Below are positions 26,713-53,992 of a DNA stretch of 64,000 nucleotides, piece by piece (position 1 is the first letter of the stretch; each line of letters opens with the position of its first letter). The stretch lies in the sequence record NC_006883.2; one strand, given 5' to 3'. A program made the translations under genes and the position numbers. Under the pieces are notes generated by a model. It saw only the letters and a list, made by a program, of their open reading frames with translations, made no database searches and was not told where the DNA came from.

Positions 26713-27078
26713 ATGGATATAGATCGCCAATTAAAATCTGAGAATCTTTTATTGGAGGAGAGAACTTGTAGAACCTGTGGAGGATACAAGAATCTGTTAA
26801 CAGATTTTTATTTGTCTAGGAGTGATACTCCAGATCTACCATCATCATATTCTTATGAATGTAAAGAGTGTGCCAAATTAAGAATTAGGAAACATTATTC
26901 AGAAGATAATATATTAGGTACTTGTTGTATTTGTGGTAGTCATGATGTAAAAGTATCTAAGGGTATTTGTAAGAAGTGTAATAATGGATTGAAACAGTTT
27001 GGATATAATATCGACACTTTAAGGAAATCTGTGCTATACTTAGAGGACAATAAATTAACTGGCACATCTAAAAAATAA
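26713..27078 (+). CDS. Endonuclease VII-like protein lacking the catalytic DHxH segment
   Basis: CRTC...CKEC then CCIC-10aa-GICKKCN.GL..F...IDTLRKSVLYLE. Confidence 0.6.
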   Translation: MDIDRQLKSENLLLEERTCRTCGGYKNLLTDFYLSRSDTPDLPSSYSYECKECAKLRIRKHYSEDNILGTCCICGSHDVKVSKGICKKCNNGLKQFGYNIDTLRKSVLYLEDNKLTGTSKK

Positions 27079-34607: not shown

Positions 34608-35372
34608 ATGGCTATTAATTTTCCAAGCAATCCTAGCGTAAACGATACTCACACTGCAAATAATATTACATGGAAGTGGGATGGAACAACTTGGAAAGTT
34701 GGCATAACCACTTTTAATGCTGCTACTATTCCAGGTATTAGCACATCAGGGACATCATATTTTTATGATTTAGATGTTGCTCATAATGTATCAGTGGGTT
34801 CTTCTATAACTGCTGGTACTTATTTTGGTGATGGTGCTGGTTTAACAAATGTTGCTGGTACTACTGGTCCTGCTGGTCCTACTGGTTCTCCTGGTCCTGC
34901 TGGTCCTGCTGGTGGAACTGGTCCACAAGGTTCACCTGGTCCTGCTGGTTCGCCTGGTGCAACTGGTCCTGTTGGAAATCCTGGTCCTACTGGTCCTTCT
35001 GGTGGTCCTGTTGGTCCTCCAGGTCCTCCTGGTCCTGCTGGTGGTGGAACGGGTGGAACTATTGGTAGTGGATCCTTTAATGCAGTTGCAGGTCAAACAG
35101 TTCAGTTGGATAGTGTTACACAGGCTCATTTACTATCTGATTATGATATGTATTTCAGTCATAGTGCTGGTACACAATCTCAAAAAGTTACAGTATTAAA
35201 TGCTGGTGGAACTACTGCACACTCTCAACAATTTGGTATTATGTTTAATAATAATTTACTTGTTTCTGTTGGATCATCTATTCATAATAGTAATTTAACT
35301 GTAAATGTTACACCAGAGCCAGGAATAACTGGCACAGTAACGTATAAGTTCCTTAGAACGGAGGTATCATGA
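34608..35372 (+). CDS. Collagen-like fibre protein
   Basis: [17 protein letters not shown] head; ~20 Gly-X-Y triplets. Confidence 0.85.
34857..35042 (+). repeat. Collagen Gly-X-Y coding repeat
   Basis: Repeated ggtcct(g/a)ct units. Confidence 0.9.
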
Positions 35373-37224: not shown

Positions 37225-40200
37225 ATGGCAGATAAAGGATTTGGCGTAAAGAAAATTAATTTGATTGGGGCATCTGGTACTCCAACACTTACAAGTCCAA
37301 ATAATCTAAATTTAAACGCAGTAAACGTTGCTATAAGTACTGATGTATCAATCGGTGGAACTTGTACTGCATATGAATTTAGTGGTGCTACTGCTAGTTG
37401 GATGGTTGGTAATGATGGAACAGATAATTACACTTTTATAGGATCAGGTATTTCAACTCAAGTAAATGATCCAGAATTAAATCTTTATAAAGGACAAAAA
37501 TATATTTTTCATAATAGATCTTCAGGGCATCCATTTAGGATTCAAATCACTCCTAATGGGTCTGTAGGTGGACAATATAATACTGGTGTGACCAATAATG
37601 ATGGTTCCGCACAAACAGATATTATATTTGAAGTTCCACAAGATGCACCTGATACTCTATATTATCAGTGTACATCGCATACTGGAATGGGTGGTAAGAT
37701 TAATATAGTAGGTGTAGCTTCTGATACTGATACAACTTTAGATGGAAAGACTAGTGGTACAAATGTTTACTTAGGAACTACTGCTGGTGCAGCAAATACA
37801 ACAAGTCCTGGTAATGAAGTTGGTATTGGTTACAGTGCATTAATGCAATCTACTGGCCGTGATAGTACTGGTATTGGAGCATACGCTTTACAAAATGTTA
37901 ATGGATATTATAATACTGCAGTTGGATCTTACGCTGGATTTAGTACTACTGCTGGCATTAGCACTGCATCAGATAATAGTTTCTTTGGATATGCTTCTGG
38001 GTATCAGAATAATGGAGATGGTAATTCTGGAATTGGTCTTCGTACTCTCTTTAGAAATATTGGAACAGAGAATACTGCATTGGGTATGTATTCTTTACAG
38101 GATAATATAAATGGAAGTTATAATGTTGGAATGGGTGTTTATGCACAATACGCTAATGTGAGTGGATCAAACAATACTTCGGCTGGTTGGGCTGCATTAT
38201 CCTCTAATGTGAGTGGTAATTTTAATTTGGTTTTAGGGTCGAATGCATTAAGAACAATTACCTCTGGACTTTCAAATGCTGCTGTAGGTTCTGATGCAGG
38301 AAGGTATTTAACTGGTGGATCTAGTTATAATACATTAATTGGTAATTATGCTGTTGGTATTGGTACTACTGGAAGTTATGTCACTGCCGTTGGAGCAAGT
38401 GCATTAGCTAAGAATATAGCAAATTTTAACACAGCAACAGGTGCTTATGCATCGCTACAGAATACAACAGGAGCTTTGAATTGTTCTTTCGGTGCTTATG
38501 CAGGAGAAAATACCACGACAGGAAGTTGGAATAATGCGTTTGGATATGCTGCTTTAAATGATAATATAACAGGTGTATCTAATAATGTAATGGGATATTT
38601 CGCACTTGGAGTTTCTACTGATGCTAGTTATAATGTTGCAATCGGATATGAGAGTTTAAAATCTCTAAAAACTGGTGATTATAATACTGCCGTAGGACAT
38701 AGGACACTTGATCTTCAAACTAGTGGAAGTTATCAAACTGCTCTTGGTGGATTTGCATTAGGTATGAGTACTACGACCATATCAAATACTGCTATTGGAT
38801 ATGGTAGTCAACTTCAGACTATAGAAGGTAATTATAATACTGCGGTTGGAAATAATAGTTTACGGGAAAATATTGAGGGTGATAGTAATGTTGCTGTGGG
38901 AGATAACGCAATTGGTATTGGAACGACTGGAAGTTATAATGTTGCAGTTGGTGCTTATGCATTAGAAAAAAATAATAGTAACTATAGTACTGCAGTAGGT
39001 TATAAAGCATTACGAAACATTACGAAATCTCAAAGTACTGCAGTAGGTTATAACGCTGCTGGTATAGCTACGGAAGCTTGGAACGTATGTGCATTTGGAT
39101 TTCAAACACTATTTCACTTGACAACAGGTGATAATAATTGTGCTTATGGACATATGAGTCAGTTTGATACCACAACAGGACAATTTAATTCGTCCTTTGG
39201 TTCGTTATCAATGAGAGATAACACCATAGGTGGTCAGAATTGTGCTTTTGGTGAACAGGCATTAAAATCAAGTGGAATTGGTTCTGATAATACTGCAGTG
39301 GGATATAAAGCACTGTTGAGCATGAATAACGGTTCAAATACTAATACTGCGGTTGGTAGTTTTTGTCTTAGTAATACAGGTACAGTTGCACCATTTGCTA
39401 TAGCTGTTGTTAATTCTGGAGCAAGTTCATATACTATGAGTGGTACTGATAGAAATGGATCAGTTTCTGGTGGAGCCAACCCAACTATTACTCTTAATAT
39501 AAATGACACTGCTACAATTAGTATAAGTGCTATTGGACATCCATTCTGGATTCAGTCAAGTTCTGGTGGATATAATGCTTCAAATGTTCTTGGAACAAAC
39601 GAGGGTGTAACTAATAATGGGCAAGATAATGCAAATGTCGTTTTTAAGCCTAAAACTGCTGGTACTTATTACTATGTTTGCCAAAATCATGCGGCTATGC
39701 AGGGGCAAATTGTTGTTCAGGACCCACCTAATCCAAGCACTGCTGTGGGATATGCTGCGTTATACAACCAAACAGTTGGGGGTAATAACGTAGCTGTTGG
39801 TAAAAATACAATGTTCCTTAACCTTTCAGGTTATAACAATACTTCGATAGGTCAACAATCACATTATGGTAATAGTGGATCAACTCATTCATCATACGAC
39901 TGTGTCTCTGTGGGACATATGGCACATTATTCCCTTGATACAGGATATTCAAATACTGCTGTGGGTAAATGGGCTGGATATTTTGTTAATACTGGTAGTA
40001 ATAATACCTGTATAGGGTATCAGTCAGGAACTGGATCATCACCATCAGGTTCTGTTAATAGTAATAGTAATGTTATTTGTTTAGGAGATAATTCTGTTCA
40101 AAATATATATTGTAATGATACATCAATTAGTTCTTCGGATCTGAGAGATAAGGCTGATATACAAAATTTTGATCATGGATTAGCGTGGATTAAGGAGTTA

Positions 40201-40509
40201 AGACCTGTTACTTATCGTTGGGATAAGCGTTCTTGGTATACTGAAGATCCAGCTACTAAAGGAACACCTGATGGAAGTAAGAAGACTAATCGTATTCATG
40301 TAGGTTTCATAGCACAAGAAGCAATTGAAGTTGAGAAAAAATTTGGTTATGGAGATAAAAAGGATAATATGCTTATCACTAACCAAGATGAGGATGATGC
40401 TGATCCTTCATATGGTATGAAGTATGAAAGATTAATCCCAGTTCTTGTAAATGCAATCAAGGAATTGTCTAGTGAGATAGACACTTTGAAGGCAAAAATA
40501 GCAGAATAG
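37225..40509 (+). CDS. Tail fibre with YadA-like repeats, two cupredoxin-like modules and C-terminal S74 chaperone
   Basis: Many NTAVGYxAL repeats; SSDLRDKADI...LRPVTYRW...GFIAQE...YERLIPVLVNAIKEL. Confidence 0.88.
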   Translation: MADKGFGVKKINLIGASGTPTLTSPNNLNLNAVNVAISTDVSIGGTCTAYEFSGATASWMVGNDGTDNYTFIGSGISTQVNDPELNLYKGQKYIFHNRSSGHPFRIQITPNGSVGGQYNTGVTNNDGSAQTDIIFEVPQDAPDTLYYQCTSHTGMGGKINIVGVASDTDTTLDGKTSGTNVYLGTTAGAANTTSPGNEVGIGYSALMQSTGRDSTGIGAYALQNVNGYYNTAVGSYAGFSTTAGISTASDNSFFGYASGYQNNGDGNSGIGLRTLFRNIGTENTALGMYSLQDNINGSYNVGMGVYAQYANVSGSNNTSAGWAALSSNVSGNFNLVLGSNALRTITSGLSNAAVGSDAGRYLTGGSSYNTLIGNYAVGIGTTGSYVTAVGASALAKNIANFNTATGAYASLQNTTGALNCSFGAYAGENTTTGSWNNAFGYAALNDNITGVSNNVMGYFALGVSTDASYNVAIGYESLKSLKTGDYNTAVGHRTLDLQTSGSYQTALGGFALGMSTTTISNTAIGYGSQLQTIEGNYNTAVGNNSLRENIEGDSNVAVGDNAIGIGTTGSYNVAVGAYALEKNNSNYSTAVGYKALRNITKSQSTAVGYNAAGIATEAWNVCAFGFQTLFHLTTGDNNCAYGHMSQFDTTTGQFNSSFGSLSMRDNTIGGQNCAFGEQALKSSGIGSDNTAVGYKALLSMNNGSNTNTAVGSFCLSNTGTVAPFAIAVVNSGASSYTMSGTDRNGSVSGGANPTITLNINDTATISISAIGHPFWIQSSSGGYNASNVLGTNEGVTNNGQDNANVVFKPKTAGTYYYVCQNHAAMQGQIVVQDPPNPSTAVGYAALYNQTVGGNNVAVGKNTMFLNLSGYNNTSIGQQSHYGNSGSTHSSYDCVSVGHMAHYSLDTGYSNTAVGKWAGYFVNTGSNNTCIGYQSGTGSSPSGSVNSNSNVICLGDNSVQNIYCNDTSISSSDLRDKADIQNFDHGLAWIKELRPVTYRWDKRSWYTEDPATKGTPDGSKKTNRIHVGFIAQEAIEVEKKFGYGDKKDNMLITNQDEDDADPSYGMKYERLIPVLVNAIKELSSEIDTLKAKIAE

Positions 40510-41614: not shown

Positions 41615-44600
41615 ATGGCTGAATTTAGACTTGGCAGATTAAAATTTAACTGGCGTAGTGACTGGACTATAAGTACTGCGTATGTTATAGATGACATCAT
41701 AAAGTATGGTGCAAATACTTATGTTTGTAAGAAGAATCACACTTCTGCTGGTGCTGAAGAATCTTTTTATAGCACAGATCTAACACTTAATTGGTCCTTA
41801 CATACCGAAGGAATTGTTAATAAGGGAAGTTGGGCAGCAAATTATTGGTATAAAGTAAACGATATATTCAAATACGGTAATACTCAATATAGAGTAACTA
41901 CTGGATTTACTTCTGGTGCTACTTTTGATGAAGCTGCTACTACTACAAATGTAGTTGAGTATTTACAATCATTTAATTATGAAGATACTTGGAGTAATTC
42001 AACACAGTATCAGGATGGAGATGTTGTAACTTACGGTGGATACACTTACGTTGCAAAGAGCGTTAATACAAATAAAGCACCTTCATATAATTTAACGAAT
42101 GATTGGGATATTATAACTACAGGATTTAGTGTAGTTGGTTATTATTCTACAACAACAGATTATAAGCAAGGTGATGTGGTTCAATATGGTGGATACACCT
42201 ATGTTGCAATTACAACTAGTACAAATACTATCCCAACAACACCAGCAAATTGGACCTTAGTTACTAAAGGTGTTTCTTGGAAAGGTAACTGGGATTCTAC
42301 TGTAAAGTATGAATTAGGAGATGCTGTAAAGAGATTAAGTAATAGTTATATTGGTGTTGCTACTGTTGGTAGTTTAAACGAAGATCCTTCAACTGACGGT
42401 ACAAGTACTTATTGGAGTATGTTGGCTGAGGGTGCTGCCAACAATGTGATGACCACTCAAGGTGATATGGTCTATTACACCACTGGTTCTGCTAGATTAC
42501 CTAAAGGAACTAATGGTCAAGTACTCGCTATGAGTTCTGGTGGTGTACCTAATTGGGAATCTAATAGTGTAACACATCCAGTTTTCTATGTAACAGAAGA
42601 AGGAAGTGATACTAATGATGGTTCAAATATCAGTAGAGCATTTGCCTCAGTAAGACATGCTTGTGCAAAAGCAGCTGAAACAGGAAATCCTTGTTCAGTT
42701 TATGTAAAAGCAGGAACATATTCAGAAACACTTCCAATTGTAGTGCCACCATTTGTATCTATTGTTGGAGATAACTTAAGAACATCTAGGGTTAAACCAG
42801 GTGTTCATTATGCACATACCTTTATAAGTGGTCTTACTGGTAGTATTACGGCAGATTCTGGTGGTCCTTTTACTGCTGGTAGTGGAACAACCTACGATTC
42901 TGCAACAGGAGACCTTGTATTAGAAATTGGAACACATAGTTTAACTACTTCTAATACTATTGGTATTAATGGTAATTCATTAACATTTACTTGTTCACAG
43001 GATAGTCATGCTACTCAGCATACTTATCCAAGACCAAAGGATCCAGTTTACAATAAAACTGATATAGCAATTATTGCAACAACTGGAACTACAATTACAG
43101 TTAGAGTTGGTAAAGGAAATGCATCTAGGCATCAAGATCTAGTATTAGCATCTGCTCCTTCTTCTGTTTCATATGGTTCTTCAATCTTTAATGGTGCTGG
43201 AACTAAATGTGCTGTTATCTTAGATTCAGATTACGCTGAGAAGAAGATACAAATCAGATGGCTTTCTGGTGGAGAATGGACAACATCAGACGAGTGGGAA
43301 AATGGTGGAACAGATATAGGTATTACTTCGGTTACTACAAGACCGAATGAAGAATCAACAATGTTTATGTTAAGCAACGCAACGATGCTTAAAGACTTGT
43401 TGATGGAAGATATGACTGGTTTCAGTCCAGCAGGTATCGTTACAACTATAAGTTGTAGTATTGCTGGATCAAAAGTAACTGGTAGTGAGTTATTCCCAGA
43501 CTTAGTTGGTACAACTGTAACTGGTTCTGGTGTTTCAACTGGAACAAAGGTTAGTGGATTTATTGATGCACAAACATTAGAAGTTGATATAGTTCAAAAT
43601 CTTGGTGCAACTGATCTTACATTTACAGCACAACAGTATGATCCTAATAACGCACATATTAAAGGAACCTTTTGTGCTTTAAACCCAGAAAGTAGAGTTA
43701 TTAAATCACCATACGTATCAAACTGTTCTGCAAAATCAGTTAGAGGTATTGGTGCAGTCGTAGATGGTGGGGTTCATAGACAATTTGTTGATGGATCAGC
43801 AACACCTTCTAACAAATCTATCGTGTTTGACTCATTTACAAATATTCACGATGAAGGAATGGCATTCTGGATCACAGACGGTGCTGTGGCAGAAACAGTT
43901 TCTTGTTTCACATACTATAACCATATAAGTTATGCTGCTACTCGTGGTGGAAGACTTAGATCTCTTGTTGGAAATAGTTCTTGGGGTAAGTATGGTGTTG
44001 TAAGTTCTGGATTCAGTCCACTTGAAAAAGCAAGAGAAGGTGAGATTGAAGGATTAGTTCTTCAATATGATGTAGATAGTATGAGTGGATCTGGTTTCCA
44101 AGTTGGAGAAAGAATTAGAGGTAACACTTCTGGTGCTTGGGGTTATATTAACTCAGTACAAGGAACTACTCAAGAGAAAATATATTATTCAGTAATTAGT
44201 GAAGGTCCAGTTGGAGTTGGAACAGGATTTGGACCTGGTGAAACCATTACTGCTATGACTTCAGGAACAACTGCTCCACTTCTTAATAATACAAGTGCAA
44301 ACGAGGGTCAAGCTGGTCGTATTCTTGTTCTTAGTGGATTAGGAACATCACCAACCCTTGAAGTTAATGGTAGTATTGAATTTATTACTGGATTGGGTAA
44401 CGGTGGATATAATAGCGATAATATTACTGGTGCTGATCCATTTACCTTTGTGATCTCTGGTGTGAGTCAGACAGGTCCTACTGGTAAGGGTAATGTACAG
44501 ATTGACAGAGCACAGTGGTCTACTACTGGTGCAGCACATACAGGTGGAAGTACAACGTTTGTTAAGTATCCAGTTAATATTGGTGCTTCATTTACTCTGC

Positions 44601-45595
44601 TAACTCCTGCTGCTGCTGGCGATACTACTCTCAGTACGAGTACTATTAGTGGATTCAATCCAGGTGAATATTGTTTATCACCAACTAATGAACTTTGTAA
44701 GATTGTTAGTTTCCCAACTGCAAACTCTATGAGTGTTCAGAGAGCACAAGATGGTGCTGGTGCTGCTGTTGCATATAGTATTGGTGACATCTTTACTTCA
44801 ATTGGAACAACTAGTTTTGTTACTTCAGCAGAAGTTAATAAAGATTTTACTGGTGTTTCTACTGACTTTAGAGCAACGATTTCAAATAGATTTGAGGATG
44901 CTGTTGGTGCTTATATGAAGATTGATGATGAATTTACAAAAGTAACAGGTGTTACTACTGATACTTACGGTACTACTACAGTAACTCTTGTTGAAGAAAA
45001 GGCTGCTAAATCCTTTGATGAACAGGATATTAAGATCCGCTACATCTTCAGTCAGGCAAGATTAACTGGACATGACTTCTTACAAGTAGGAACTGGTGGA
45101 ACATACACAACTAATTGGCCTGATGTTCCTTCACAAGATCCAGTTCAGACACAGGAAATTACAGAAGACTTCCCAGGAAGGGTATTCTATGTTTCTACTG
45201 ATGAACAAGGTAACTTTAGGGTTGGTAAGTACTTCCGTGTTAACCAGGCAACTGGTGCTGCAACGTTGAATGCTAACAGTTTCGATCTATCTGGTTTGAC
45301 CTCAATTCGATTGGGTTCAATCGGTGCTCAGTTAGGTGCTCAAGTTAATGAGTTCTCAACTGATGGAACTATGGCACAAAATAGTAATGAGAAAGTGCCA
45401 ACACAGGCTGCGGTTAGAACTTATGTTGCTACTAGAGATGCAGAGCATCTTGTAATGGCACAAAACGCAGCAAACTTGGGTATAGCAACTGCATTAGCAC
45501 ACGCTAACGCTGGTATAGCAACTTTAAGAACTGATGCAAACACTGAGTTCAGATCAGGAGTTCAGGTATCTGAATTCTTTGTTGGGCAAATCTAA
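41615..45595 (+). CDS. Large virion structural/tail protein with aromatic (CBM5/12-like) repeats
   Basis: 1326 aa; WKGNWDSTVKYELGD-type repeats; paralogous motifs to 28874. Confidence 0.8.
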   Translation: MAEFRLGRLKFNWRSDWTISTAYVIDDIIKYGANTYVCKKNHTSAGAEESFYSTDLTLNWSLHTEGIVNKGSWAANYWYKVNDIFKYGNTQYRVTTGFTSGATFDEAATTTNVVEYLQSFNYEDTWSNSTQYQDGDVVTYGGYTYVAKSVNTNKAPSYNLTNDWDIITTGFSVVGYYSTTTDYKQGDVVQYGGYTYVAITTSTNTIPTTPANWTLVTKGVSWKGNWDSTVKYELGDAVKRLSNSYIGVATVGSLNEDPSTDGTSTYWSMLAEGAANNVMTTQGDMVYYTTGSARLPKGTNGQVLAMSSGGVPNWESNSVTHPVFYVTEEGSDTNDGSNISRAFASVRHACAKAAETGNPCSVYVKAGTYSETLPIVVPPFVSIVGDNLRTSRVKPGVHYAHTFISGLTGSITADSGGPFTAGSGTTYDSATGDLVLEIGTHSLTTSNTIGINGNSLTFTCSQDSHATQHTYPRPKDPVYNKTDIAIIATTGTTITVRVGKGNASRHQDLVLASAPSSVSYGSSIFNGAGTKCAVILDSDYAEKKIQIRWLSGGEWTTSDEWENGGTDIGITSVTTRPNEESTMFMLSNATMLKDLLMEDMTGFSPAGIVTTISCSIAGSKVTGSELFPDLVGTTVTGSGVSTGTKVSGFIDAQTLEVDIVQNLGATDLTFTAQQYDPNNAHIKGTFCALNPESRVIKSPYVSNCSAKSVRGIGAVVDGGVHRQFVDGSATPSNKSIVFDSFTNIHDEGMAFWITDGAVAETVSCFTYYNHISYAATRGGRLRSLVGNSSWGKYGVVSSGFSPLEKAREGEIEGLVLQYDVDSMSGSGFQVGERIRGNTSGAWGYINSVQGTTQEKIYYSVISEGPVGVGTGFGPGETITAMTSGTTAPLLNNTSANEGQAGRILVLSGLGTSPTLEVNGSIEFITGLGNGGYNSDNITGADPFTFVISGVSQTGPTGKGNVQIDRAQWSTTGAAHTGGSTTFVKYPVNIGASFTLLTPAAAGDTTLSTSTISGFNPGEYCLSPTNELCKIVSFPTANSMSVQRAQDGAGAAVAYSIGDIFTSIGTTSFVTSAEVNKDFTGVSTDFRATISNRFEDAVGAYMKIDDEFTKVTGVTTDTYGTTTVTLVEEKAAKSFDEQDIKIRYIFSQARLTGHDFLQVGTGGTYTTNWPDVPSQDPVQTQEITEDFPGRVFYVSTDEQGNFRVGKYFRVNQATGAATLNANSFDLSGLTSIRLGSIGAQLGAQVNEFSTDGTMAQNSNEKVPTQAAVRTYVATRDAEHLVMAQNAANLGIATALAHANAGIATLRTDANTEFRSGVQVSEFFVGQI

Positions 45596-45614: not shown

Positions 45615-45622
45615 TATAAATA
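45615..45622 (+). promoter_or_regulatory. T4 late promoter
   Basis: TATAAATA. Confidence 0.7.
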
Positions 45623-45647: not shown

Positions 45648-45968
45648 ATGGCATCTGGTATTTTAGGACAGTCTGCGTTGGGTGCGAGCTCTAATACTAC
45701 AGTATATACAGTTCCTGCATCAACTCACGCTGTTGTCAATGTAAGTATATTGAATCGATCAAGTTCATCTGCTTCTACAGTAAGACTTGCTATTTCTGCA
45801 ACAGGTTCTCCTGGTAATGCAGAATGGATTGAATATGGTGTATCTGTTCCTAAAGGTGCTGTTCTTGAAAGAACTGCAATATCTTTGAATGCAGGTAAAA
45901 ATGTAGTCGCTTGGGCATCTGGTTCAGATTGCAGTGTAAGTGTCTATGGTATTGAACAAGCAGTTTAA
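45648..45968 (+). CDS. Small fibre-associated protein (~110-aa module)
   Basis: VYTVPAS..VNVSILNR..VRLAI..WIEY..LERT. Confidence 0.75.
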   Translation: MASGILGQSALGASSNTTVYTVPASTHAVVNVSILNRSSSSASTVRLAISATGSPGNAEWIEYGVSVPKGAVLERTAISLNAGKNVVAWASGSDCSVSVYGIEQAV

Positions 45969-45980
45969 TAGGTATCTAAC

Positions 45981-46256
45981 ATGGGAAGATTTGTAGGTCT
46001 TAGTATAAACAAAGGAAAAGGTGGTGGTGGTGGAACCATTGTTGGAACTGATTCTTTTACAAGGGCATCAGGTATTACTACTAATGCTGCTAATAACGTA
46101 ACAGCTATTACGTTGGGTGACAATAATTATAGTAATATTGCATATAATGCATCCAATCTTATAACATCCTATACTGAAAGTATAGGTGGTGTTGATAAAA
46201 ATTGGCAACTTACATATAATTCCGCAAATCTAGTTACAGCAATTACTGAGGTATAA
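45981..46256 (+). CDS. Small structural protein
   Basis: YNASNLITS/YNSANLVTA repeat. Confidence 0.7.
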   Translation: MGRFVGLSINKGKGGGGGTIVGTDSFTRASGITTNAANNVTAITLGDNNYSNIAYNASNLITSYTESIGGVDKNWQLTYNSANLVTAITEV

Positions 46257-46259
46257 GAA

Positions 46260-47330
46260 ATGGCAGCAGACGTATTAACCTATAATGCTCTCGCAGAAGT
46301 TAATCAAGAGTTAAAGGCTGAATCTGCAGCATTGACAGCTGCTATTACTGCTGCTGAAAGTGGTGGTGGCGGTGGTGGAGCCGCAGAAACCACTACTCAA
46401 GCAATAATGAAGAATGCATATAGTCCAAATGCTGGATTATGGTGTATGATTCCAACAGGAAGTGCTTCTTCAGAAGCAGACCCTCATGCAGGTGGTTGGA
46501 GTGGTGGTATTAAAGTATGTGATACATCAAACTATCGTAGATGTGGTTGTTGCTGTGGATGGACTGTTCCAGGTGGCGTAACTTGTGCTCGATTCCAAAT
46601 TTGGGGTGCTGGTGGTGGAGCTGGAATGGGATGTTGTTGTGGTGGATCTCCTAATGGTGGATCTGGTGCATATGCGTCTGTTATTATGCCTGTAACAGCA
46701 GGTCAAACTTATACTCTTTGTGCTGGTTGTGCTTACTGTTGTTATACAGAAAGAAACCAGATGACTGCTGATGGATGTCCATCTTACGTTCAAGGTCAAG
46801 GATTAACAAACTTCTGTGCTGAAGGTGGCGAATCTAATATTTTCTGTGAAAGAAAAACTAGATGTCATTACCAGCCAAATCAAAGTAACGTTTGTCAGTA
46901 CATGGGTGGATGTATATGTAATAATGGTTCAGATTATTGTGAAGAAAATTCTCAAACTCCTTCTCCTGGATATCCACAGCATAGAATGGACGCAAACTTC
47001 CCTGTAGCTGCGAGTTGTAAGACTCACTATGGATCAGCGACAGGTGGAAGTGTATATGGTATACCTGGAACATTTTCATTCTGGAAACATAATCACGGAT
47101 CATATAACCAGTGCATGAAGCACGGTGGTACATATGGATTCCCACAATGTTCTTGCTGTAATGCAACTATGAATAATGAAAATACTGGATGTTGCTACCA
47201 AGCATGTTATTGTCAAGCAATGCAATGTATTCCTGGTGCTGGTGCATGGGGTTACTCAACTTGCGGTGGAGACACTACTGGGTGTGCTGACATTGGTAAA
47301 ACAGGTATGGTTTGTGTATCATACTGCTAA
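46260..47330 (+). CDS. Cys-rich glycine-rich adhesin-like protein A
   Basis: ~36 Cys in 356 aa (manual count); RFQIWGAGGG glycine-rich domain; N-terminal coiled coil. Confidence 0.75.
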   Translation: MAADVLTYNALAEVNQELKAESAALTAAITAAESGGGGGGAAETTTQAIMKNAYSPNAGLWCMIPTGSASSEADPHAGGWSGGIKVCDTSNYRRCGCCCGWTVPGGVTCARFQIWGAGGGAGMGCCCGGSPNGGSGAYASVIMPVTAGQTYTLCAGCAYCCYTERNQMTADGCPSYVQGQGLTNFCAEGGESNIFCERKTRCHYQPNQSNVCQYMGGCICNNGSDYCEENSQTPSPGYPQHRMDANFPVAASCKTHYGSATGGSVYGIPGTFSFWKHNHGSYNQCMKHGGTYGFPQCSCCNATMNNENTGCCYQACYCQAMQCIPGAGAWGYSTCGGDTTGCADIGKTGMVCVSYC

Positions 47331-47338
47331 TATATTAT

Positions 47339-47346
47339 TATAAATA
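47339..47346 (+). promoter_or_regulatory. T4 late promoter
   Basis: TATAAATA. Confidence 0.7.
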
Positions 47347-47380
47347 ACTAAAGTAAAAAAAACAGAGATCGTAAAAAACA

Positions 47381-48058
47381 ATGGCAAACATTACATCATC
47401 TTTTACTCACCTTCTTCCTACTGAATTGTATGTCGCTGGCATCTCTACAAATATAACAGGAAGTTATACTTATGTTGGACCTGATGCGTTTGATGTATGG
47501 GTTGACAGGTCAGATGGAGAAGTAACTAAAATTGCCGTTACTACTGATCCTCCTGAAGGTGGTGATATTAGAAAAACTATTTCGGCAACGAGTCCTGATT
47601 CATTGCCGATGGCATATGCGTTATCACATCAATTCACCGATGATTATAGTTGGCCTTACACCTATACTAATGAAACTATGGAGAATGGTGATATCTATAA
47701 GAAGATAGATAACCCAGATTTAAGAGATGCATACCAAGTTTATTGGGATTTTGCTTCAGAAAAATGGGCATTCAAGCAGATATTAAAACTATTAGTGAAT
47801 GATAATGCTGATGAAGCAAAGAGAAGAAGGGATTATGTAAAAACTTTTACAGATCAATATGATTTTGGTGATACTATTAACACTAAAGCAGATCATTATA
47901 TTGCTGGTATTGGAACATATCTAGGAAATAATCCATACTATAAGAGGTGGAAGTACATAACACTTCCAGCATCAGTAGGAACTATACCAAAAATTCCTGT
48001 TGATGTTCAAATTGAATTAAATAAAGTCTCTATTCGAGGGGTTGGGGGTGTTGTCTAA
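47381..48058 (+). CDS. Hypothetical protein between the Cys-rich paralogs (possible chaperone)
   Basis: 225 aa, no Cys. Confidence 0.7.
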   Translation: MANITSSFTHLLPTELYVAGISTNITGSYTYVGPDAFDVWVDRSDGEVTKIAVTTDPPEGGDIRKTISATSPDSLPMAYALSHQFTDDYSWPYTYTNETMENGDIYKKIDNPDLRDAYQVYWDFASEKWAFKQILKLLVNDNADEAKRRRDYVKTFTDQYDFGDTINTKADHYIAGIGTYLGNNPYYKRWKYITLPASVGTIPKIPVDVQIELNKVSIRGVGGVV

Positions 48059-49126
48059 ATGGATGTATTAGTTTATAGTGCTCTGAATGAACAAGCTGCA
48101 CTGAAAAAAGAAATAGCTGAAAAGCAAGCCTGTTTATTTGATCTTAAACAGGATGCTAGTGCTGGTGGTGGTGCTTCTGGTTCTGCAGAATCTTGTGCTA
48201 AAGCTTGGTTAAATCGTGAAGATGGTAAAGGTGAGAAGGGGCATTGGAAAGATCCTGCTGATACAACTAAATGGCATGTTTGGGAAGGAGAAGGTTGGAC
48301 TGGTGGTCTAAAAGTTTGTGATGGTACTGGTTATTATAGATGTAACTGTAGTTGTAACTGGACTGTTCCTTCTGGTGTAACAAAAGCTAGATTCCAATTA
48401 TGGGGTGCTGGTGGTGGTGCAAATAGAGGACCTTGTTGTTGTGCTCATACACCATTCGGATCTACTGGTGCTTATGCATCGGTTATTATTCCAGTAACTG
48501 CTGGTTGGACTTATTGTATGTGTACTGGTTGTGCTTATTGTTGCTATGCATATAGTCAATCTGGAGCACATAGACTAAATGGATGTCAAACTTGGGTAAG
48601 TGGATGCCACTTCTGTAATTTCTGTGCAGATGGAGGACAAGGTGGTTTAGGTGTTTGGATGTCCATGAGAGGTAACTACTGTGTTTGTAGGGTTGCTTCT
48701 GCACAAAATGATCAGTGTGGTGGGCAGATATGTTATAATGGTGGTGACTGGTGTTTCACTGGACCTAACTTTGGTGAGATATGTAATGTTCCTGGATCTC
48801 ATACTTCTGGATCTCTTTGCGATATCGCTTGTCCAACATTCGAGAATGTAATTTACGGTATTCGTGGAATATGGCCAAGTATGTGTTTCAATAGTGACCA
48901 TTATGGATGGGAAATGCATCCTCCTGTATATGGATTTGAAACTGCTACTAGATGTTGCCCTTGCTATACTAGTGGTAACTGTTGTGGATATGCGTGTAGT
49001 GCTTGGCAGAACTCTTGTTTAAGATATCCTGGTGCTGGTGGATTTGCATCACATGCTATGGGTGGTGGTACTAGTCACTGTGGTGACGTTGGTAAGTTTG
49101 GTATGGTTTGTGTATCTTGGAAATAG
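48059..49126 (+). CDS. Cys-rich glycine-rich adhesin-like protein B
   Basis: ~36 Cys in 355 aa; paralog of 46260 (RFQLWGAGGG, CAYCC, GMVCVS). Confidence 0.75.
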   Translation: MDVLVYSALNEQAALKKEIAEKQACLFDLKQDASAGGGASGSAESCAKAWLNREDGKGEKGHWKDPADTTKWHVWEGEGWTGGLKVCDGTGYYRCNCSCNWTVPSGVTKARFQLWGAGGGANRGPCCCAHTPFGSTGAYASVIIPVTAGWTYCMCTGCAYCCYAYSQSGAHRLNGCQTWVSGCHFCNFCADGGQGGLGVWMSMRGNYCVCRVASAQNDQCGGQICYNGGDWCFTGPNFGEICNVPGSHTSGSLCDIACPTFENVIYGIRGIWPSMCFNSDHYGWEMHPPVYGFETATRCCPCYTSGNCCGYACSAWQNSCLRYPGAGGFASHAMGGGTSHCGDVGKFGMVCVSWK

Positions 49127-49150
49127 TATAATTTTTTAAATATAAAAATT

Positions 49151-49186
49151 AAAACCCTTGACTTATTCGGTTGAGGGTTTTATAAT
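49151..49186 (+). promoter_or_regulatory. Sigma70-like promoter overlapping a terminator-like hairpin
   Basis: TTGACT 49158-17 bp-TATAAT 49181; aaaaccct...agggtttt inverted repeat. Confidence 0.7.
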
Positions 49187-49281
49187 GTAATGGTGTAGTG
49201 TAATCATAACCTAACACTCTTAGTTTGGTTGACTATATAAATCACCAATGATATAATATTAAACATTGAGGTTTGACTTGA

Positions 49282-50394
49282 ATGAATAAGGCGTTTTTCA
49301 TTAATGGTGGAGCAGGGCGTGTGCTTTGTTCTATTCCTGCATTAGAGAGGTTTGCAGAAACACATGACGATTTTGTAGTAGTATCTGAATCTTGGCATGA
49401 GTTATATTTAAACAGTAAAATATTACGAGAGAAGGTTTTTCCTTTTGGTCATAAAGATTTATTTGAAGATCATTTGAAAGATAAAAAGATAATATCACCT
49501 GAACCATACAGAGTAAATCAATATTTTAATCAGAAATGTAATCTCATACAAGCATTTGATATAGAGATTAATGAGTTGGATGAGATCCCAGAAACTAGAA
49601 ATATTAGTATAGATCTTAATAAAGAAGATCAAATAACTGGACATAATTTAACTGCTGAAGTAAAAGGCACTTTAGGTAAAGATAAGGTAATAGTATTTCA
49701 ACCATTTGGACAAGGTTCTAAATCTGAAGGTAATTTTATATACGATAGTAGTGGTAGAAGTTTTGAAGTTTCTAATATAATATCTCTAATTAAAGAGTTG
49801 AATAAAAATTACGGTGTAATTATTATGACAACTATAGAAATTCCAGGATGGCAGGGAATGGGTGTTGCTTGTCCTCAAGGTTTAGGATTGAATGGTTGGA
49901 TGGGTGTTATTAACTCTGCGGATTATTTCTTAGGGTGTGACAGTATTGGGCAGCATATGGCATATGCATTAAAGAAACCTTCTACTGTTGTTATTGGATC
50001 AACTTTTCCTGAAAATATTTCTTATCCAGATACTTCTAGATTTACTGTTATTGATAATGGAGAAGGAAGAAGACGGTATAGTCCAATAAGATTAACAATG
50101 GATTTGAATGTTGATAGAAATAATGAAGATTTAATGGTACTAGACGATAAGAAGTTAAAAAATATTGTTAAAGGTATTAAAGATAAGATAGGTGTAAGTA
50201 AATCAATAAATGTAGGAGTTGGGGTGACTCCTAAAGGTTCTTCTACACCAGAATTGGTATATAATAAACCCAATAAAGGAATTACACCTTCAAAGTATTC
50301 AATCTCTCTTGATGGAGATTCAAAATCTTCAAAGAAAAAGAAAAAACCAATCGAAGAATTATTGACTTTAGAAACTAAAAAAGGATTATCTTAA
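49282..50394 (+). CDS. GT9 (heptosyltransferase)-like glycosyltransferase
   Basis: GGAGRVLCSIPAL, VFQPFG, FLGCDSIGQHMAYALKKP..VIGST. Confidence 0.72.
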   Translation: MNKAFFINGGAGRVLCSIPALERFAETHDDFVVVSESWHELYLNSKILREKVFPFGHKDLFEDHLKDKKIISPEPYRVNQYFNQKCNLIQAFDIEINELDEIPETRNISIDLNKEDQITGHNLTAEVKGTLGKDKVIVFQPFGQGSKSEGNFIYDSSGRSFEVSNIISLIKELNKNYGVIIMTTIEIPGWQGMGVACPQGLGLNGWMGVINSADYFLGCDSIGQHMAYALKKPSTVVIGSTFPENISYPDTSRFTVIDNGEGRRRYSPIRLTMDLNVDRNNEDLMVLDDKKLKNIVKGIKDKIGVSKSINVGVGVTPKGSSTPELVYNKPNKGITPSKYSISLDGDSKSSKKKKKPIEELLTLETKKGLS

Positions 50395-50396
50395 TT

Positions 50397-52199
50397 ATGA
50401 GTAATATTATCTGTTCTATTTCTCGTGGACATAATGCTAGTACCACGTTGATGGTTGATGGTAAAATAATTTTTTATCTTGAGGAAGAGCGTTTATCTAG
50501 GTTTAAACGTGATGGTACTCCGTTGTTGGGGATGGCAAAAGTATATGAATATGTGGATCATATTGATCATTTAGTTGTTTGTCATACACATAGATCCGCA
50601 CCTACAGTTGATTGGACTACTGAGGATCTTTATAAATCTTGGATGAGAAAATTATGTAAGAGAAAAACTCCATATAAAATAACTTTTATTGATAGTATTC
50701 ACCATGAAATGCATTCTAATATAGCATTTATAAATTCTGGATTTGATAGTGCTGCTGCTGTCATTGCTGATGGTGCAGGAAGTTTTTTACATATTGAAGC
50801 TTTTGAAAATACAATATACGAATTTGAATCAATATATCATGTCAAGAAAGATTTAGATACTAAAACTGTGTATAAGCACTATGGAACAGACGAACCATGT
50901 GGATATATGTTATTAGATAGAGAAACCCAGAATCCAAATTTGATTATTACTGAGTTTCCTGGTATAGTGAAAGAATATGAAGCAATAACAAGATATTGTG
51001 GGTTTAATTCTATTGAAGCTGGAAAAACAATGGGTTTATCTCCATATGGAGAACCAAATCCAGAGATACCTCCAATGTTTGTGAATGGATTTGGAAATAG
51101 GAATTTATTTAAACCGAATTATCCAAATGGTGCATATGTTATAGAGGATCGATATAAAATAATTAGAGATGATTATATCTCTCATAATGGAGAAGTAGGA
51201 ACAGGAGAGTATACGCAGGTTCAAAAAGATCTAGCATATGCTATTCAGAAAGAATCTGAAGATCAAATGTGTGCTTTAATTCAAAAGGCACATGAAATGA
51301 CTGGAGAAAAGAATATTGTTATATGTGGTGGGTATGGTTTAAATTGTGTTGCTAACTATAAATTTAAGCAAAGATTTCCAAATCTAAACATATATGTTGA
51401 ACCAATTTCTCACGATGGTGGAACATCTATGGGTGGTGCTTACCATGTTTATTATAATGATTATGTAAAAACAGGGAAAGAATCTAGGAAAGTAGAACCA
51501 CCAAAAACAATATATTATGGACCTCAATATGATCCAGATACATACCTAAATTATATTCATGAGTATCCAAGTGCTAAAGTTACTGATGCTTCATATGATA
51601 GTGTTGCTAGGTTAATTCGTGAAGGTAATATTGTAACTATCTTCCAAGGTAGATCGGAAGCAGGTCCTAGAGCACTTGGAAATAGATCTATTCTATTTGA
51701 TCCTACTATTAAAGATGGTAAGGACATAGTTAATAGTGTAAAACATCGGGAGTTCTTTAGACCATTTGCGTGTTCTATTCTTGCAGATAAGGTTCATGAT
51801 TGGTTTGATCTTGCTGGTATGGATGATTCTCCAAGTATGATGTATGCTGTAGATGCTTTACCTGGAGTTGCAGAGAAGATTCCATCAGTAATACATGTTG
51901 ATAATACTTGTAGAATTCAGACAGTTACTAAAGAGCAAAATGAACATTATTATAATTTGATTAGTGCTTTTGAAAAACTTTCCAACACGCCTATATTATT
52001 CAATACATCATTTAATTTGGGTGGAGATCCTTTAGTTGAAGATATTGATGATGCATTAGATACACTATCAACTAGTGATATTAATTATATGTATTTGCCT
52101 GAAATTCAAAAGTTAGTTGAACTAAAAACTAGGGAAATGCAAGATACAAGACAACAACCTATTAATATACTAACGGAAACTGCTGATACTAAATTATAA
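50397..52199 (+). CDS. Carbamoyltransferase (NodU/CmcH family)
   Basis: GHNAS, HHEMH, AGKTMGL, GGYGLNCVAN, HDGGTSMG, GPRALGNRS, NTSFN. Confidence 0.93.
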   Translation: MSNIICSISRGHNASTTLMVDGKIIFYLEEERLSRFKRDGTPLLGMAKVYEYVDHIDHLVVCHTHRSAPTVDWTTEDLYKSWMRKLCKRKTPYKITFIDSIHHEMHSNIAFINSGFDSAAAVIADGAGSFLHIEAFENTIYEFESIYHVKKDLDTKTVYKHYGTDEPCGYMLLDRETQNPNLIITEFPGIVKEYEAITRYCGFNSIEAGKTMGLSPYGEPNPEIPPMFVNGFGNRNLFKPNYPNGAYVIEDRYKIIRDDYISHNGEVGTGEYTQVQKDLAYAIQKESEDQMCALIQKAHEMTGEKNIVICGGYGLNCVANYKFKQRFPNLNIYVEPISHDGGTSMGGAYHVYYNDYVKTGKESRKVEPPKTIYYGPQYDPDTYLNYIHEYPSAKVTDASYDSVARLIREGNIVTIFQGRSEAGPRALGNRSILFDPTIKDGKDIVNSVKHREFFRPFACSILADKVHDWFDLAGMDDSPSMMYAVDALPGVAEKIPSVIHVDNTCRIQTVTKEQNEHYYNLISAFEKLSNTPILFNTSFNLGGDPLVEDIDDALDTLSTSDINYMYLPEIQKLVELKTREMQDTRQQPINILTETADTKL

Positions 52200-52615
52200 T
52201 GCAGAACGATATTGTTTGGTGCAACGGCACATTCGATATTCTTCATCCAGGACACATAGAACTATTCAAGGTTGCTAGATCTCTAGGAGACAAAGTAATA
52301 GTTGCTACGGATACGGATGAGAAGATTCGTACTGACAAAGGTGAGCATCGCCCTATAAACGATCTTTGTTATAGGGTTGCTATGCTTGAGGCAATCAAGT
52401 ATATTGATGTGGTACATACCTTTGGTAGTAGGAAAGAGTTAGAGGATCTAATTGAACTATACCAACCTGATATATTATTACTTGGTGATGATTGGAGGGA
52501 TGGTGATGTAGTTGGTTGGGAACACGCTGGTGAGGTAAGACATCTTCCTAGAGTAGGTGGATATGCCAGCAGTAATGTCATCAAAAAGATTAATGAAAGT
52601 ACTGTTACTGGGTGA
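52199..52615 (+). CDS. Heptose-1-phosphate nucleotidyltransferase (HldE C-terminal/HldC-like)
   Basis: NGTFDILHPGH HxGH motif, GDDW. Confidence 0.88.
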   Translation: MQNDIVWCNGTFDILHPGHIELFKVARSLGDKVIVATDTDEKIRTDKGEHRPINDLCYRVAMLEAIKYIDVVHTFGSRKELEDLIELYQPDILLLGDDWRDGDVVGWEHAGEVRHLPRVGGYASSNVIKKINESTVTG

Positions 52616-53333
52616 TAGTTGTGAAGATGAGTACATCTATGGTAGGTGTACTAGGTTAAGTCCAGAGGCTCCTGTACCTGTATTAGATTATGCTAAGTTA
52701 CAAACTAAATCTGGTATGGCAGGTAACGTTTGTTTAAACTTACAATCATTTGGTCTTGACATAACATTTTTAACTAACCCTGAGAAGATAGTAAAGACAA
52801 GATTTATTGATGAGAAATCAAATCAACAGATACTCAGAGTTGATAATGAGACTAGAGTAAAACCTTTATTGGTTCCTGTAGCAACAAATAGTTTTGATGC
52901 AGTTGTTATTTCGGATTATAATAAAGGGTATCTACCTACAGAAAAGATATTTGAAATTGTAGAGAGTGCAACTTGCCCTGTTTTTATTGATAGTAAGAAA
53001 ACTGTTCTTCCTAACAAAGAGAATTGCTTTGTTAAGATAAATGATGTAGAATATGAGAAGTTACAGCATGATTGTTATATTGATAATCTGATAGTAACGA
53101 AAGGATCTCAAGGATGTGTTTACAAACAAACTTTATATCCAGCAGAGAAAGTAAATGTATATGATGTAGTTGGTGCTGGAGATACTTTTCTTTCAGCATT
53201 AGTCTATGGGTATATAACTACTAACAACATAGATGAATCCCTTATGATGGGAAATAGAGCAGCAGCGATTGCAGTTCAACAACCAGGAACTTACATTTTA
53301 ACAGAGGAAGATGTCCAAAAGATACTGTATTGA
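52593..53333 (+). CDS. PfkB-family heptose kinase (HldE N-terminal/HldA-like)
   Basis: RLSPEAPVPV, GMAGNV, ISDYNKG, DVVGAGDTF. Confidence 0.9.
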   Translation: MKVLLLGDSCEDEYIYGRCTRLSPEAPVPVLDYAKLQTKSGMAGNVCLNLQSFGLDITFLTNPEKIVKTRFIDEKSNQQILRVDNETRVKPLLVPVATNSFDAVVISDYNKGYLPTEKIFEIVESATCPVFIDSKKTVLPNKENCFVKINDVEYEKLQHDCYIDNLIVTKGSQGCVYKQTLYPAEKVNVYDVVGAGDTFLSALVYGYITTNNIDESLMMGNRAAAIAVQQPGTYILTEEDVQKILY

Positions 53334-53655
53334 TATTGATGGTACAATTTGTACTCCAACTGTGGGTAGGGATTACCATAAAGCACAACCTTGGCAAGAT
53401 CGTATTGCAAAAATAAATAATTTATATGATGAAGGTCATTATATTATCTACTTTACTGCTAGAGCGATGGGTAGATTTTCAGACCAACCTCATTCTATTG
53501 CTTCTGTAAAAGCAGAAGGAGTTCTATTTGATCTTACAAAGGATCAATTGGATGAGTGGGGATGTAAGTATAATGAATTGATTATGGGTAAACCTCATGC
53601 AGATTTATTCATAGATGACAAAGGAATTAACTGTGATGACTTCTTCAGAGATTAA
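53311..53655 (+). CDS. Small HAD-family phosphatase
   Basis: DIDGT, FTAR, GKP..DLFIDDK. Confidence 0.85.
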   Translation: MSKRYCIDIDGTICTPTVGRDYHKAQPWQDRIAKINNLYDEGHYIIYFTARAMGRFSDQPHSIASVKAEGVLFDLTKDQLDEWGCKYNELIMGKPHADLFIDDKGINCDDFFRD

Positions 53656-53992
53656 ATTTGTTCCTAAAGGATGGGGTTACGAGAAGTGGATATGTAATAC
53701 CCCAGAATATTGTGGTAAACTTTTATTCTTTGCTAAAGGTAAGAGATGCTCTTGGCATTATCATCTTTTAAAAGATGAAACATTTTTCTTACAGTCAGGT
53801 AAGATACATCTCTTTTATGGTTTTGATAATAATATAGGATTGTCCGAGAGTATAGTTTTAGAACCAGGTGATAAATTTCATATTGAAAGAAAGATGAGAC
53901 ATCAAATGTATGCTATGGAGGATTCAGAACTCTTTGAGTTTTCTACACAGCATTTTGATGAAGATTCACACAGGATCTTTAGAGGAGATTAA
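53636..53992 (+). CDS. Cupin-fold sugar isomerase-like protein
   Basis: VPKGWG.E, SWHYH..KDETF, HQM, EFSTQH. Confidence 0.8.
   Translation: MTSSEIKFVPKGWGYEKWICNTPEYCGKLLFFAKGKRCSWHYHLLKDETFFLQSGKIHLFYGFDNNIGLSESIVLEPGDKFHIERKMRHQMYAMEDSELFEFSTQHFDEDSHRIFRGD

Follow-up and report, generated by a model that had tools for sequence, protein, structure and literature searches.

Cysteine-rich proteins PSSM2_304 and PSSM2_306 of Prochlorococcus phage P-SSM2 as probable fibre proteins with a cysteine-rebuilt tip domain

The best solved match of the proteins described here is the tail fibre gp24 of the freshwater cyanophage Pam3 (PDB 7YPX, 7YFW). Besides an N-terminal helix, which docks the trimer to the baseplate wedge, gp24 has a TNF-like sandwich and a distal domain that is rich in glycine and carries a variable tip for receptor binding (PMC9608196, PMC9942802). 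The distal domain contains 39% glycine and 12 polyglycine motifs, the gene for the chaperone gp25 adjoins the fibre gene, and the joint between fibre and wedge is made by disulfides (PMC9608196, PMC9942802). The authors of these studies reported that gp24 resembles the ALK/LTK domain and related gp38 of phage S16 to gp24 (PMC9608196, PMC9942802). Here we analyzed a stretch of DNA of 64,000 nucleotides (the window, to which coordinates refer unless another locus is named). Its segment 45600-49300 is 100% identical to positions 231600-235300 of Prochlorococcus phage P-SSM2 (NC_006883.2), a T4-like cyanomyovirus. Three neighbouring genes on the plus strand, PSSM2_304, PSSM2_305 and PSSM2_306, are each annotated as 'hypothetical protein' in the P-SSM2 record. 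They are real genes, and PSSM2_304 and PSSM2_306 are probably short fibre or receptor-binding proteins of the P-SSM2 tail-fibre block that are expressed late and arose by an ancient duplication. The three genes are as follows.

46260..47330, plus strand: PSSM2_304, cysteine-rich paralogue A, 356 residues with 36 cysteines.
47381..48058, plus strand: PSSM2_305, cysteine-free middle protein, 225 residues, a candidate assembly factor or adaptor.
48059..49126, plus strand: PSSM2_306, cysteine-rich paralogue B, 355 residues with 36 cysteines; its start abuts the stop of PSSM2_305.

The original prediction, made from the sequence alone, described a pair of adhesin-like paralogues with about 10% cysteine on either side of a cysteine-free protein, and this description holds, well outside what chance would give. 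Cysteine makes up 10.1% of both PSSM2_304 and PSSM2_306. These two proteins rank at the top of the plus-strand open reading frames of at least 100 residues in the window, in which the median cysteine content is 1.2%. Their glycine contents are 15.7% and 15.5%, respectively, and they align end to end with 38% identity (E-value 1e-76). The motifs CCC (residues 125-127) and C-x2-C-x2-C-C (residues 154-161) are common to both, as are C-x-C and CC, and PSSM2_306 has an extra C-x2-C-x2-C. The cysteine pattern is conserved. PSSM2_304 has 583 relatives at E-values of at most 1e-3 in a protein collection clustered at 90%. Among 115 full-length sequences, with identities down to 44%, 20 alignment columns are at least 90% cysteine and 29 are at least 50% cysteine. 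A profile search of 1.84 billion representatives of 50% clusters revealed 541 clusters at E-values of at most 1e-3, 107 of them at most 1e-30, and of the 150 clusters listed, nearly all those of full length contain 6-15% cysteine. In this wider set (236 sequences), seven columns are at least 90% cysteine, corresponding to residues 99, 126, 127, 154, 157, 186 and 227 of PSSM2_304. Both proteins match PHROG 35878 over their full length and PHROG 4205 over the C-terminal 270 residues, and both of these PHROGs are of unknown function. A pattern-based scan of 185,579 bacterial and archaeal species, each represented by one genome, found no cellular homologue; distant members could escape such a scan. 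PSSM2_304 and PSSM2_306 thus apparently belong to an uncharacterised family restricted to viruses. Within this family, the A-type and B-type proteins fall into orthologous groups of their own. Members of A share 48-64% identity and members of B 42-60%, against 36-42% between A and B, indicating that the duplication is old and that both copies have been kept.

The fold class was read from a structure model. The AlphaFold model of PSSM2_304, built on 110 relatives, has a mean predicted local distance difference test score (pLDDT) of 82.8 and a predicted template modelling score (pTM) of 0.79. It consists of a helix (residues 5-34), a low-confidence glycine linker (residues 35-40) and a beta-rich domain that starts near residue 82 and runs to the C-terminus. 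The parts of the two paralogues are located as follows.

46260..46361, plus strand: N-terminal 12-residue motif and helix of PSSM2_304 (residues 1-34), presumed docking or oligomerisation part.
46491..47327, plus strand: cysteine-rich TNF-like/glycine-rich (Gly_rich_2-type) domain of PSSM2_304 (residues about 78-356), delimited by the PF21722 match of a relative and by its use as a fusion module in locus L014.
48296..49123, plus strand: cysteine-rich Gly_rich_2-type domain of PSSM2_306 (residues about 80-355), delimited by alignment to PSSM2_304 and by the A-type profile.

A Foldseek search of the PDB with this model gave Pam3 gp24 as the best match (7ypx_A, E-value 1.4e-6, probability 1.0), next two chains of the Bxb1 tail tip (9d93, E-values 7e-6 and 1e-5, probability 1.0), and then the glycine-rich domains of ALK/LTK, with E-values from 6e-3 (7lir) to 0.1. 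Against predicted viral structures, 158 matches were obtained at E-values of at most 1e-3. The first was the paralogue PSSM2_306 and the second a protein of S-CAM3, and the remainder of the best 50 of these 158 were mostly proteins named 'glycine-rich domain-containing protein', tail fibres and giant-virus collagen-like proteins. The BFVD model of PSSM2_306 (Q58M49) agrees with the PSSM2_304 model with a template modelling score (TM-score) of 0.69. Sequence profiles of relatives lead to the same fold. P0024, which is 62% identical to PSSM2_304, passes the gathering score of the Pfam family PF21722 (Gly_rich_2) with 27.3 bits against a cut-off of 24.3, and the match covers residues 92-349 of the protein and positions 5-225 of the 226 in the profile. 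Paralogues in phage S-SSM7 are also above this cut-off (26.4 and 24.9 bits), and 17 of the 110 relatives match Gly_rich_2 at E-values of at most 1. Since PSSM2_304 and PSSM2_306 themselves miss PF21722 while these relatives pass, their membership in Gly_rich_2 is by transitivity and not direct. A TNF-type beta sandwich together with a glycine-rich part, by which a Gly_rich_2-type fibre tip is recognised, was found in the PSSM2_304 model and its Foldseek matches.

Along PSSM2_304, the first 12 and the last 8 residues are very conserved and the core at residues 85-192 is conserved, and residues 193-216, 229-252, 277-288 and 301-324 are hypervariable. The first 12 residues, with a mean top-residue share of 0.85, are common to the A-type and B-type proteins. 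A blast search with the N-terminal 45 residues against all open reading frames of the window found no other protein sharing this N-terminal motif, and with the first 35 residues, a tblastn search of 50,697 phage records retrieved nothing beyond the protein itself and its close relatives. The fibre- or adhesin-like nature of the pair, its N-terminal helix, its glycine-rich scaffold and the divergence of the loops between conserved blocks, as originally predicted, are supported by the helix at residues 5-34, the Foldseek matches, the relatives passing Gly_rich_2 and the hypervariable stretches. The specific likeness to gp38-type adhesins that was predicted is not supported. The fold resembles Pam3 gp24 and ALK, and S16 gp38 is absent among the best 50 PDB matches listed.

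How far do these proteins resemble the known systems? PSSM2_304 and Pam3 gp24 share the three-part plan. In addition, Pam3 has a cyanobacterial host, an accessory gene beside the fibre gene and disulfides in its particle. However, PSSM2_304 is only 15% identical to gp24, and the TM-scores of its model to the solved fibres are modest (0.34 and 0.45). The Pam3 distal domain is far richer in glycine, whereas PSSM2_304 and PSSM2_306 contain about 15% glycine and 10% cysteine. The disulfide of the Pam3 fibre joins a single N-terminal cysteine to the wedge and is not a network within the domain. Furthermore, PSSM2_305 has no fold likeness to gp25, and the module always has two paralogues. The Bxb1 tail-tip proteins (PDB 9D93, chains Qa and Qb), the second-best solved fold match, are seen in place at the tail tip, although the identity is 16% and Bxb1 is a siphophage of an unrelated host (a mycobacteriophage). 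The ligand-binding domain of ALK/LTK (PDB 7LIR, 7LS0, 7NWZ) has the same TNF-like and glycine-rich supradomain and is a weaker fold match. It belongs to an animal cell-surface receptor, matches with a TM-score of about 0.2 and does not resemble PSSM2_304 in sequence. S16 gp38 (PDB 6F45), the distal adhesin of a Salmonella phage, has a glycine-rich scaffold with hypervariable loops, as PSSM2_304 and PSSM2_306 do, but its middle domain is a beta-helix and not a TNF-like sandwich (PMC9608196, PMC9942802). In PF21722, which occurs in phages and giant viruses, the core motif blocks of the PSSM2_304/306 family can be matched position for position with cysteine-poor repeats, whereas ordinary members contain almost no cysteine. 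Given the far lower glycine content, the cysteines in other positions and the failure of PSSM2_304 and PSSM2_306 to match the profile, the family is a variant and not a typical member of Gly_rich_2. The best reading of PSSM2_304 and PSSM2_306 is that their TNF-like/glycine-rich fibre-tip domain has been rebuilt with cysteine, and that they are produced late and are probably on display on the particle.

The gene neighbourhood also points to tail fibres. PSSM2_304-306 sit within a tail-fibre gene block in which the upstream genes PSSM2_295-301 are annotated as tail fibre, tail spike or tail proteins. The last of these, the 1326-residue fibre PSSM2_301, directly precedes the group PSSM2_302-306, and PSSM2_302 matches PHROG 11338 'tail fiber protein' (E-value 4.5e-8). 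Downstream of PSSM2_306 lie a GT9-like gene (PSSM2_307), a carbamoyltransferase gene (PSSM2_308) and heptose-pathway genes. We compared this order in 52 IMG/VR viral loci that were found with the family alignment, and examined six related loci in detail. In these six, the order is always a large fibre gene, a 106-residue gene, an optional 90-residue gene, A, the middle gene, B, the GT9-like gene and the carbamoyltransferase gene. The middle gene lies between two cysteine-rich genes in 45 of the 52 loci and follows two cysteine-rich genes in 3; the other 4 are cut by contig ends. A PSSM2_301-like fibre gene precedes the module in all loci with enough flanking sequence, even where the identity of the cysteine-rich proteins falls to 31%. 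Down to the same identity, homologues of PSSM2_307 and PSSM2_308 follow the module in all 48 viral loci with enough flanking sequence. Most of the 52 loci have a PSSM2_302 homologue, and about half have a PSSM2_303 homologue.

The strongest argument from sequence that the domain is a distal fibre end comes from locus L014, where it is fused to fibre N-termini. In L014, the cysteine-rich domain forms the C-terminal 290 residues of three proteins of 515-565 residues, whose N-termini are homologous to that of PSSM2_301 (E-values 5e-15 to 9e-9). These fusion proteins have 33-38 cysteines inside the domain and 1 outside. Other arrangements were also observed. In S-SSM7 (locus L009, 4255-6648), three tandem cysteine-rich paralogues, SSSM7_114-116, of 261-264 residues lack the N-terminal helix, and in loci L062, L063 and L065 two longer cysteine-rich genes (469-489 residues) are followed by the middle gene. 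L002 encodes an ordinary Gly_rich_2 protein of 549 residues with 4 cysteines.

Late expression is suggested by promoter motifs. The T4-type late promoter motif is documented upstream of late genes in cyanomyoviruses (PMC2984593). The window contains five exact plus-strand matches to the octamer, and four of them lie in the 13% of the window without open reading frames. The signals and small genes of the module are as follows.

45615..45622, plus strand: T4-type late promoter motif, exact octamer, 33 nucleotides before the start of PSSM2_302.
45648..45968, plus strand: PSSM2_302, 106 residues, cysteine-free; opens the putative late unit PSSM2_302-303-304.
45981..46256, plus strand: PSSM2_303, 91 residues, cysteine-free; weak YD/RHS-repeat-like match (Pfam RHS_repeat, E-value 1.9e-4).
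47339..47346, plus strand: T4-type late promoter motif, exact octamer, 42 nucleotides before the start of PSSM2_305.
49150..49182, plus strand: terminator-like hairpin after PSSM2_306, with a 14-bp stem, -16.2 kcal/mol and a z-score of -3.9 against shuffled sequences.
49158..49257, plus strand: two sigma-70-like promoter matches (11/12) ahead of PSSM2_307, consensus matches only, at the module boundary.

The motif before PSSM2_302 occupies the same place in the relatives L002 and L007, and an exact motif or its one-off cyanophage form lies ahead of the middle gene in L002, L005 and L007. In S-SSM7, such an exact or one-off motif lies ahead of the cysteine-poor gene that follows the cysteine-rich genes, and in P-SSM2 the octamer also stands 30 nucleotides before the fibre gene PSSM2_315. 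Gaps between genes of the module are 12 nucleotides between PSSM2_302 and PSSM2_303, 3 nucleotides between PSSM2_303 and PSSM2_304 and 0 nucleotides between PSSM2_305 and PSSM2_306. Hairpins comparable to that after PSSM2_306 follow the last cysteine-rich gene in L010 and S-SSM7. From these motifs, we infer two putative late units, PSSM2_302-303-304 and PSSM2_305-306, with the sugar genes in a unit of their own.

These observations can be joined in a model. The 12-residue N-terminus and the helix of about 30 residues would dock the protein on the baseplate or another fibre and oligomerise it, like the helix of Pam3 gp24. The glycine linker would join this helix to the distal TNF-like and glycine-rich domain of about 275 residues, in which the four hypervariable stretches would carry the binding specificity. 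In this family, much of the polyglycine scaffold has been replaced, with about 30 cysteines in former glycine, hydrophobic-core and polar positions and in short insertions. The cysteines would rigidify the domain by cross-links, mainly disulfides that form after the particle has reached oxic seawater, and some of them may form shared-thiolate sites. PSSM2_305 would be made together with PSSM2_306 from its own late promoter and would be accessory to both fibres, as an assembly factor or an adaptor.

Several points weigh against this reading. The TM-scores to solved fibres are modest, as noted above. PSSM2_304 and PSSM2_306 have no Pfam match at E-values of at most 0.1 and no NCBIfam match, and the family profile finds nothing at E-values of at most 10 among all PDB chains by sequence. 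Furthermore, the many polyglycine motifs of Pam3 gp24 have no equivalent beyond three short glycine blocks, and the difference in glycine content means that the polyglycine lattice may be largely absent. Cysteine counts are even in 113 relatives and odd in 123, and many cysteines are singles specific to one lineage. This is unlike what a fully disulfide-paired design predicts, namely even counts with gain and loss in pairs. As for the literature, the P-SSM2 expression papers found give only quantitative polymerase chain reaction data for three marker genes and no whole-genome expression. The locus tags and protein accessions of PSSM2_304-306 are named in no paper found, nor was any supplement of Sullivan 2010 naming them found. 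The literature likewise yielded no proteome or structural map of P-SSM2 particles.

The role of PSSM2_305 is the part of the model for which a rival explanation survives best. The original prediction proposed that this protein is the chaperone of its neighbours, and only part of this proposal stands. Its position beside the fibre gene is that of a chaperone gene, and it is tightly coupled to PSSM2_306. In all loci examined, 0-5 nucleotides separate the middle gene from B, and the stop of PSSM2_305 abutting the start of PSSM2_306 suggests that the two are produced in matched amounts. Position and coupling support a putative role as accessory to the fibres. The AlphaFold model of PSSM2_305 is confident (pLDDT 86.9); in it, residues 1-135 form a beta domain and residues 141-183 a helical hairpin. 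It has, however, no significant match in the PDB by Foldseek; the best has an E-value of 0.058 and a probability of 0.08, and no chaperone is listed. A chaperone assignment based on fold was therefore dropped, as the model resembles neither Pam3 gp25 nor Tfa of phage Mu. PSSM2_305 also has no Pfam, PHROG or NCBIfam match, and 56 of 56 relatives have 0 or 1 cysteine. It is quite possible, though somewhat less likely than not, that PSSM2_305 is instead a structural adaptor, which would remain part of the particle and link the cysteine-rich proteins to each other or to the baseplate. The matched amounts suggested by the short gap and the confident model without likeness to gp25, Tfa or any other PDB entry agree with an adaptor. 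So does the conservation of PSSM2_305, which is as deep as that of the cysteine-rich genes: its homologues lie between cysteine-rich genes even in the most divergent loci. On the other hand, accessory genes directly after fibre genes typically encode chaperones, as gp25 does in Pam3. In addition, the middle gene comes after both cysteine-rich genes in three loci, and in L014 a small cysteine-free gene follows each of the three cysteine-rich fibre genes. The cysteine-poor gene SSSM7_118 of S-SSM7 was considered as a PSSM2_305 homologue and rejected because it does not match the PSSM2_305-family profile.

Next, the cysteines themselves have to be explained. Their placement was read residue by residue by aligning glycine-rich repeats of P0259 to the family profile. 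P0259 is a protein of 5418 residues with 0.2% cysteine and at least seven evenly spaced glycine-rich domain repeats, about 330 residues apart, and the profile matches seven of these cysteine-poor repeats. The original prediction placed the cysteines at positions that are glycine or hydrophobic in ordinary domains. This is true of C97 and C125, which are glycine in the ordinary cysteine-poor domain, and of C154 and C186, which are isoleucine, valine or leucine. It does not apply to C109, C157 and C173, which replace glutamine, serine or alanine, or to C127, C160 and C161, which are insertions. Three short core glycine blocks are kept, at about residues 116-122, 133-136 and 189-190. About 14 of the 36 cysteines of PSSM2_304 lie in predicted strands.

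According to a rival explanation, the fold is the same fibre-tip fold, but the cysteines mainly hold metal, as Zn(Cys)4-type sites, Fe-S clusters or Cu(I)-thiolate clusters, and the protein folds around the metal in the reducing cytoplasm. We consider this unlikely. In its favour, synthesis takes place in a reducing cytoplasm, and the CCC, C-x2-C-x2-C-C, C-x-C and CC motifs shared by the paralogues, with the additional one of PSSM2_306, are of the thiolate-cluster type. The lack of an even bias in the cysteine counts and the odd number of columns with at least 90% cysteine across the wide family agree with metal as well. Furthermore, the four distant columns 62, 109, 299 and 335 are jointly present in 90 relatives and jointly absent in 36 (49 when gaps in the first column are included), which fits either two cystines or one four-thiolate site and is confounded with the split into A and B types. 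However, searches with hidden Markov models of metal-binding domains in Pfam and NCBIfam gave no match for PSSM2_304 and PSSM2_306 and only single stray matches with E-values of about 0.1 among the 110 relatives. No conserved histidine was found in the family alignment, nor was a conserved aspartate partner seen. The cysteines in strands belong to the predicted core of the sandwich and not to knuckle-like loops, and the column pairs 95/160 and 87/352 co-occur as disulfide partners would. Disulfides are also documented in the particle of a cyanophage, Pam3 (PMC9608196, PMC9942802). Cross-linking mainly through disulfides thus appears only moderately likelier than metal clusters.

Metal sites may also exist in other fibre proteins of the block, which is a further point for the metal explanation. 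The fibre or spike protein PSSM2_298 (window 37225-40509) has a weak match to Pfam Copper-bind (E-value 8.9e-5) and two C-x2-H-x2-M loops (residues 149-155 and 819-825); at the second, which was examined for an upstream histidine, one was seen. Its C-terminus is a Peptidase_S74 chaperone domain. PSSM2_295 (window 31085-34597) has one such loop near residue 403. Cupredoxin-like modules with apparent copper ligands therefore seem to sit in these two tail proteins. The blue-copper modules on which the original prediction drew are thus present in the neighbourhood, but nothing ties them to PSSM2_304-306.

A more speculative idea, to which we give rather little credence, is that the cysteine-saturated tips are chemically active. 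They might carry thiolate metal clusters, or their residues might be modified by the products of the GT9-like transferase gene, the ADP-heptose genes and the carbamoyltransferase gene. If this is true, the particle would display receptor-binding tips that are metal-loaded, glycosylated or carbamoylated, and redox-sensitive. The likeness of PSSM2_307 to heptosyltransferases consists of weak Pfam and NCBIfam matches only, and a phmmer search of the PDB with it found nothing. At 49282-53992 of the window, PSSM2_307 and PSSM2_308 are followed by ADP-heptose-type genes (cytidylyltransferase-like, PfkB kinase, isomerase, cupin and epimerase). The constant linkage of PSSM2_307 and PSSM2_308 to the module raises the question of whether their substrates are fibre proteins rather than host lipopolysaccharide. 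PSSM2_312 (window 53615-53992), called 'cysteine dioxygenase', was considered as a link to the cysteine-rich genes and rejected. It matches only the generic Cupin_2, just under the cut-off, so the name looks unsupported.

Finally, it is very unlikely that the cysteine-rich proteins are absent from the particle and work within the infected cell, for instance by buffering thiols or metal: no proteomic evidence of their location in the particle was found in the literature, high cysteine is typical of metal-sequestering proteins and a glutaredoxin gene lies about 8 kilobases downstream, but the fold class is one of fibre tips, L014 has the domain joined to fibre N-termini, the genes belong to the fibre block and follow late promoter motifs, hypervariable stretches like these are typical of binding surfaces, and 10% cysteine is far below the content of metallothioneins.

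Some further features of the window were observed. The N-terminus of the fibre PSSM2_301 (window 41615-45595) consists of three CBM_5_12 carbohydrate-binding repeats (E-value 8e-12). In the same fibre block, PSSM2_297 (window 35369-37204, 611 residues) has a subtilase domain (Peptidase_S8, E-value 1.3e-28), and in relatives the gene next to its homologue encodes an ordinary cysteine-poor Gly_rich_2 protein (locus L002, 781-2430). A 121-residue open reading frame right after psbA (window 26713-27078) has 9 cysteines (7.4%), with four C-x2-C pairs arranged like those of a zinc ribbon, and no Pfam match.

The cells to which a phage can attach are decided by its tail-fibre tips, and the ocean is rich in cyanomyoviruses of the P-SSM2 type. 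If PSSM2_304 and PSSM2_306 are fibre proteins, as is probable, a fold and a probable role can be assigned to a large family of unknown function, represented by the 541 clusters and the two PHROGs above. This would mean that a glycine-rich fibre-tip domain can be rebuilt around cysteine. The fixed module of fibre, PSSM2_302, PSSM2_303, cysteine-rich, middle and cysteine-rich genes, followed by those of sugar and carbamoyl enzymes, should be recognisable in metagenomes. A protein with 36 cysteines that is assembled in a reducing cytoplasm and would function in oxic seawater is, moreover, a good case for studying how phages use disulfides or metal, as was recently observed for Pam3.

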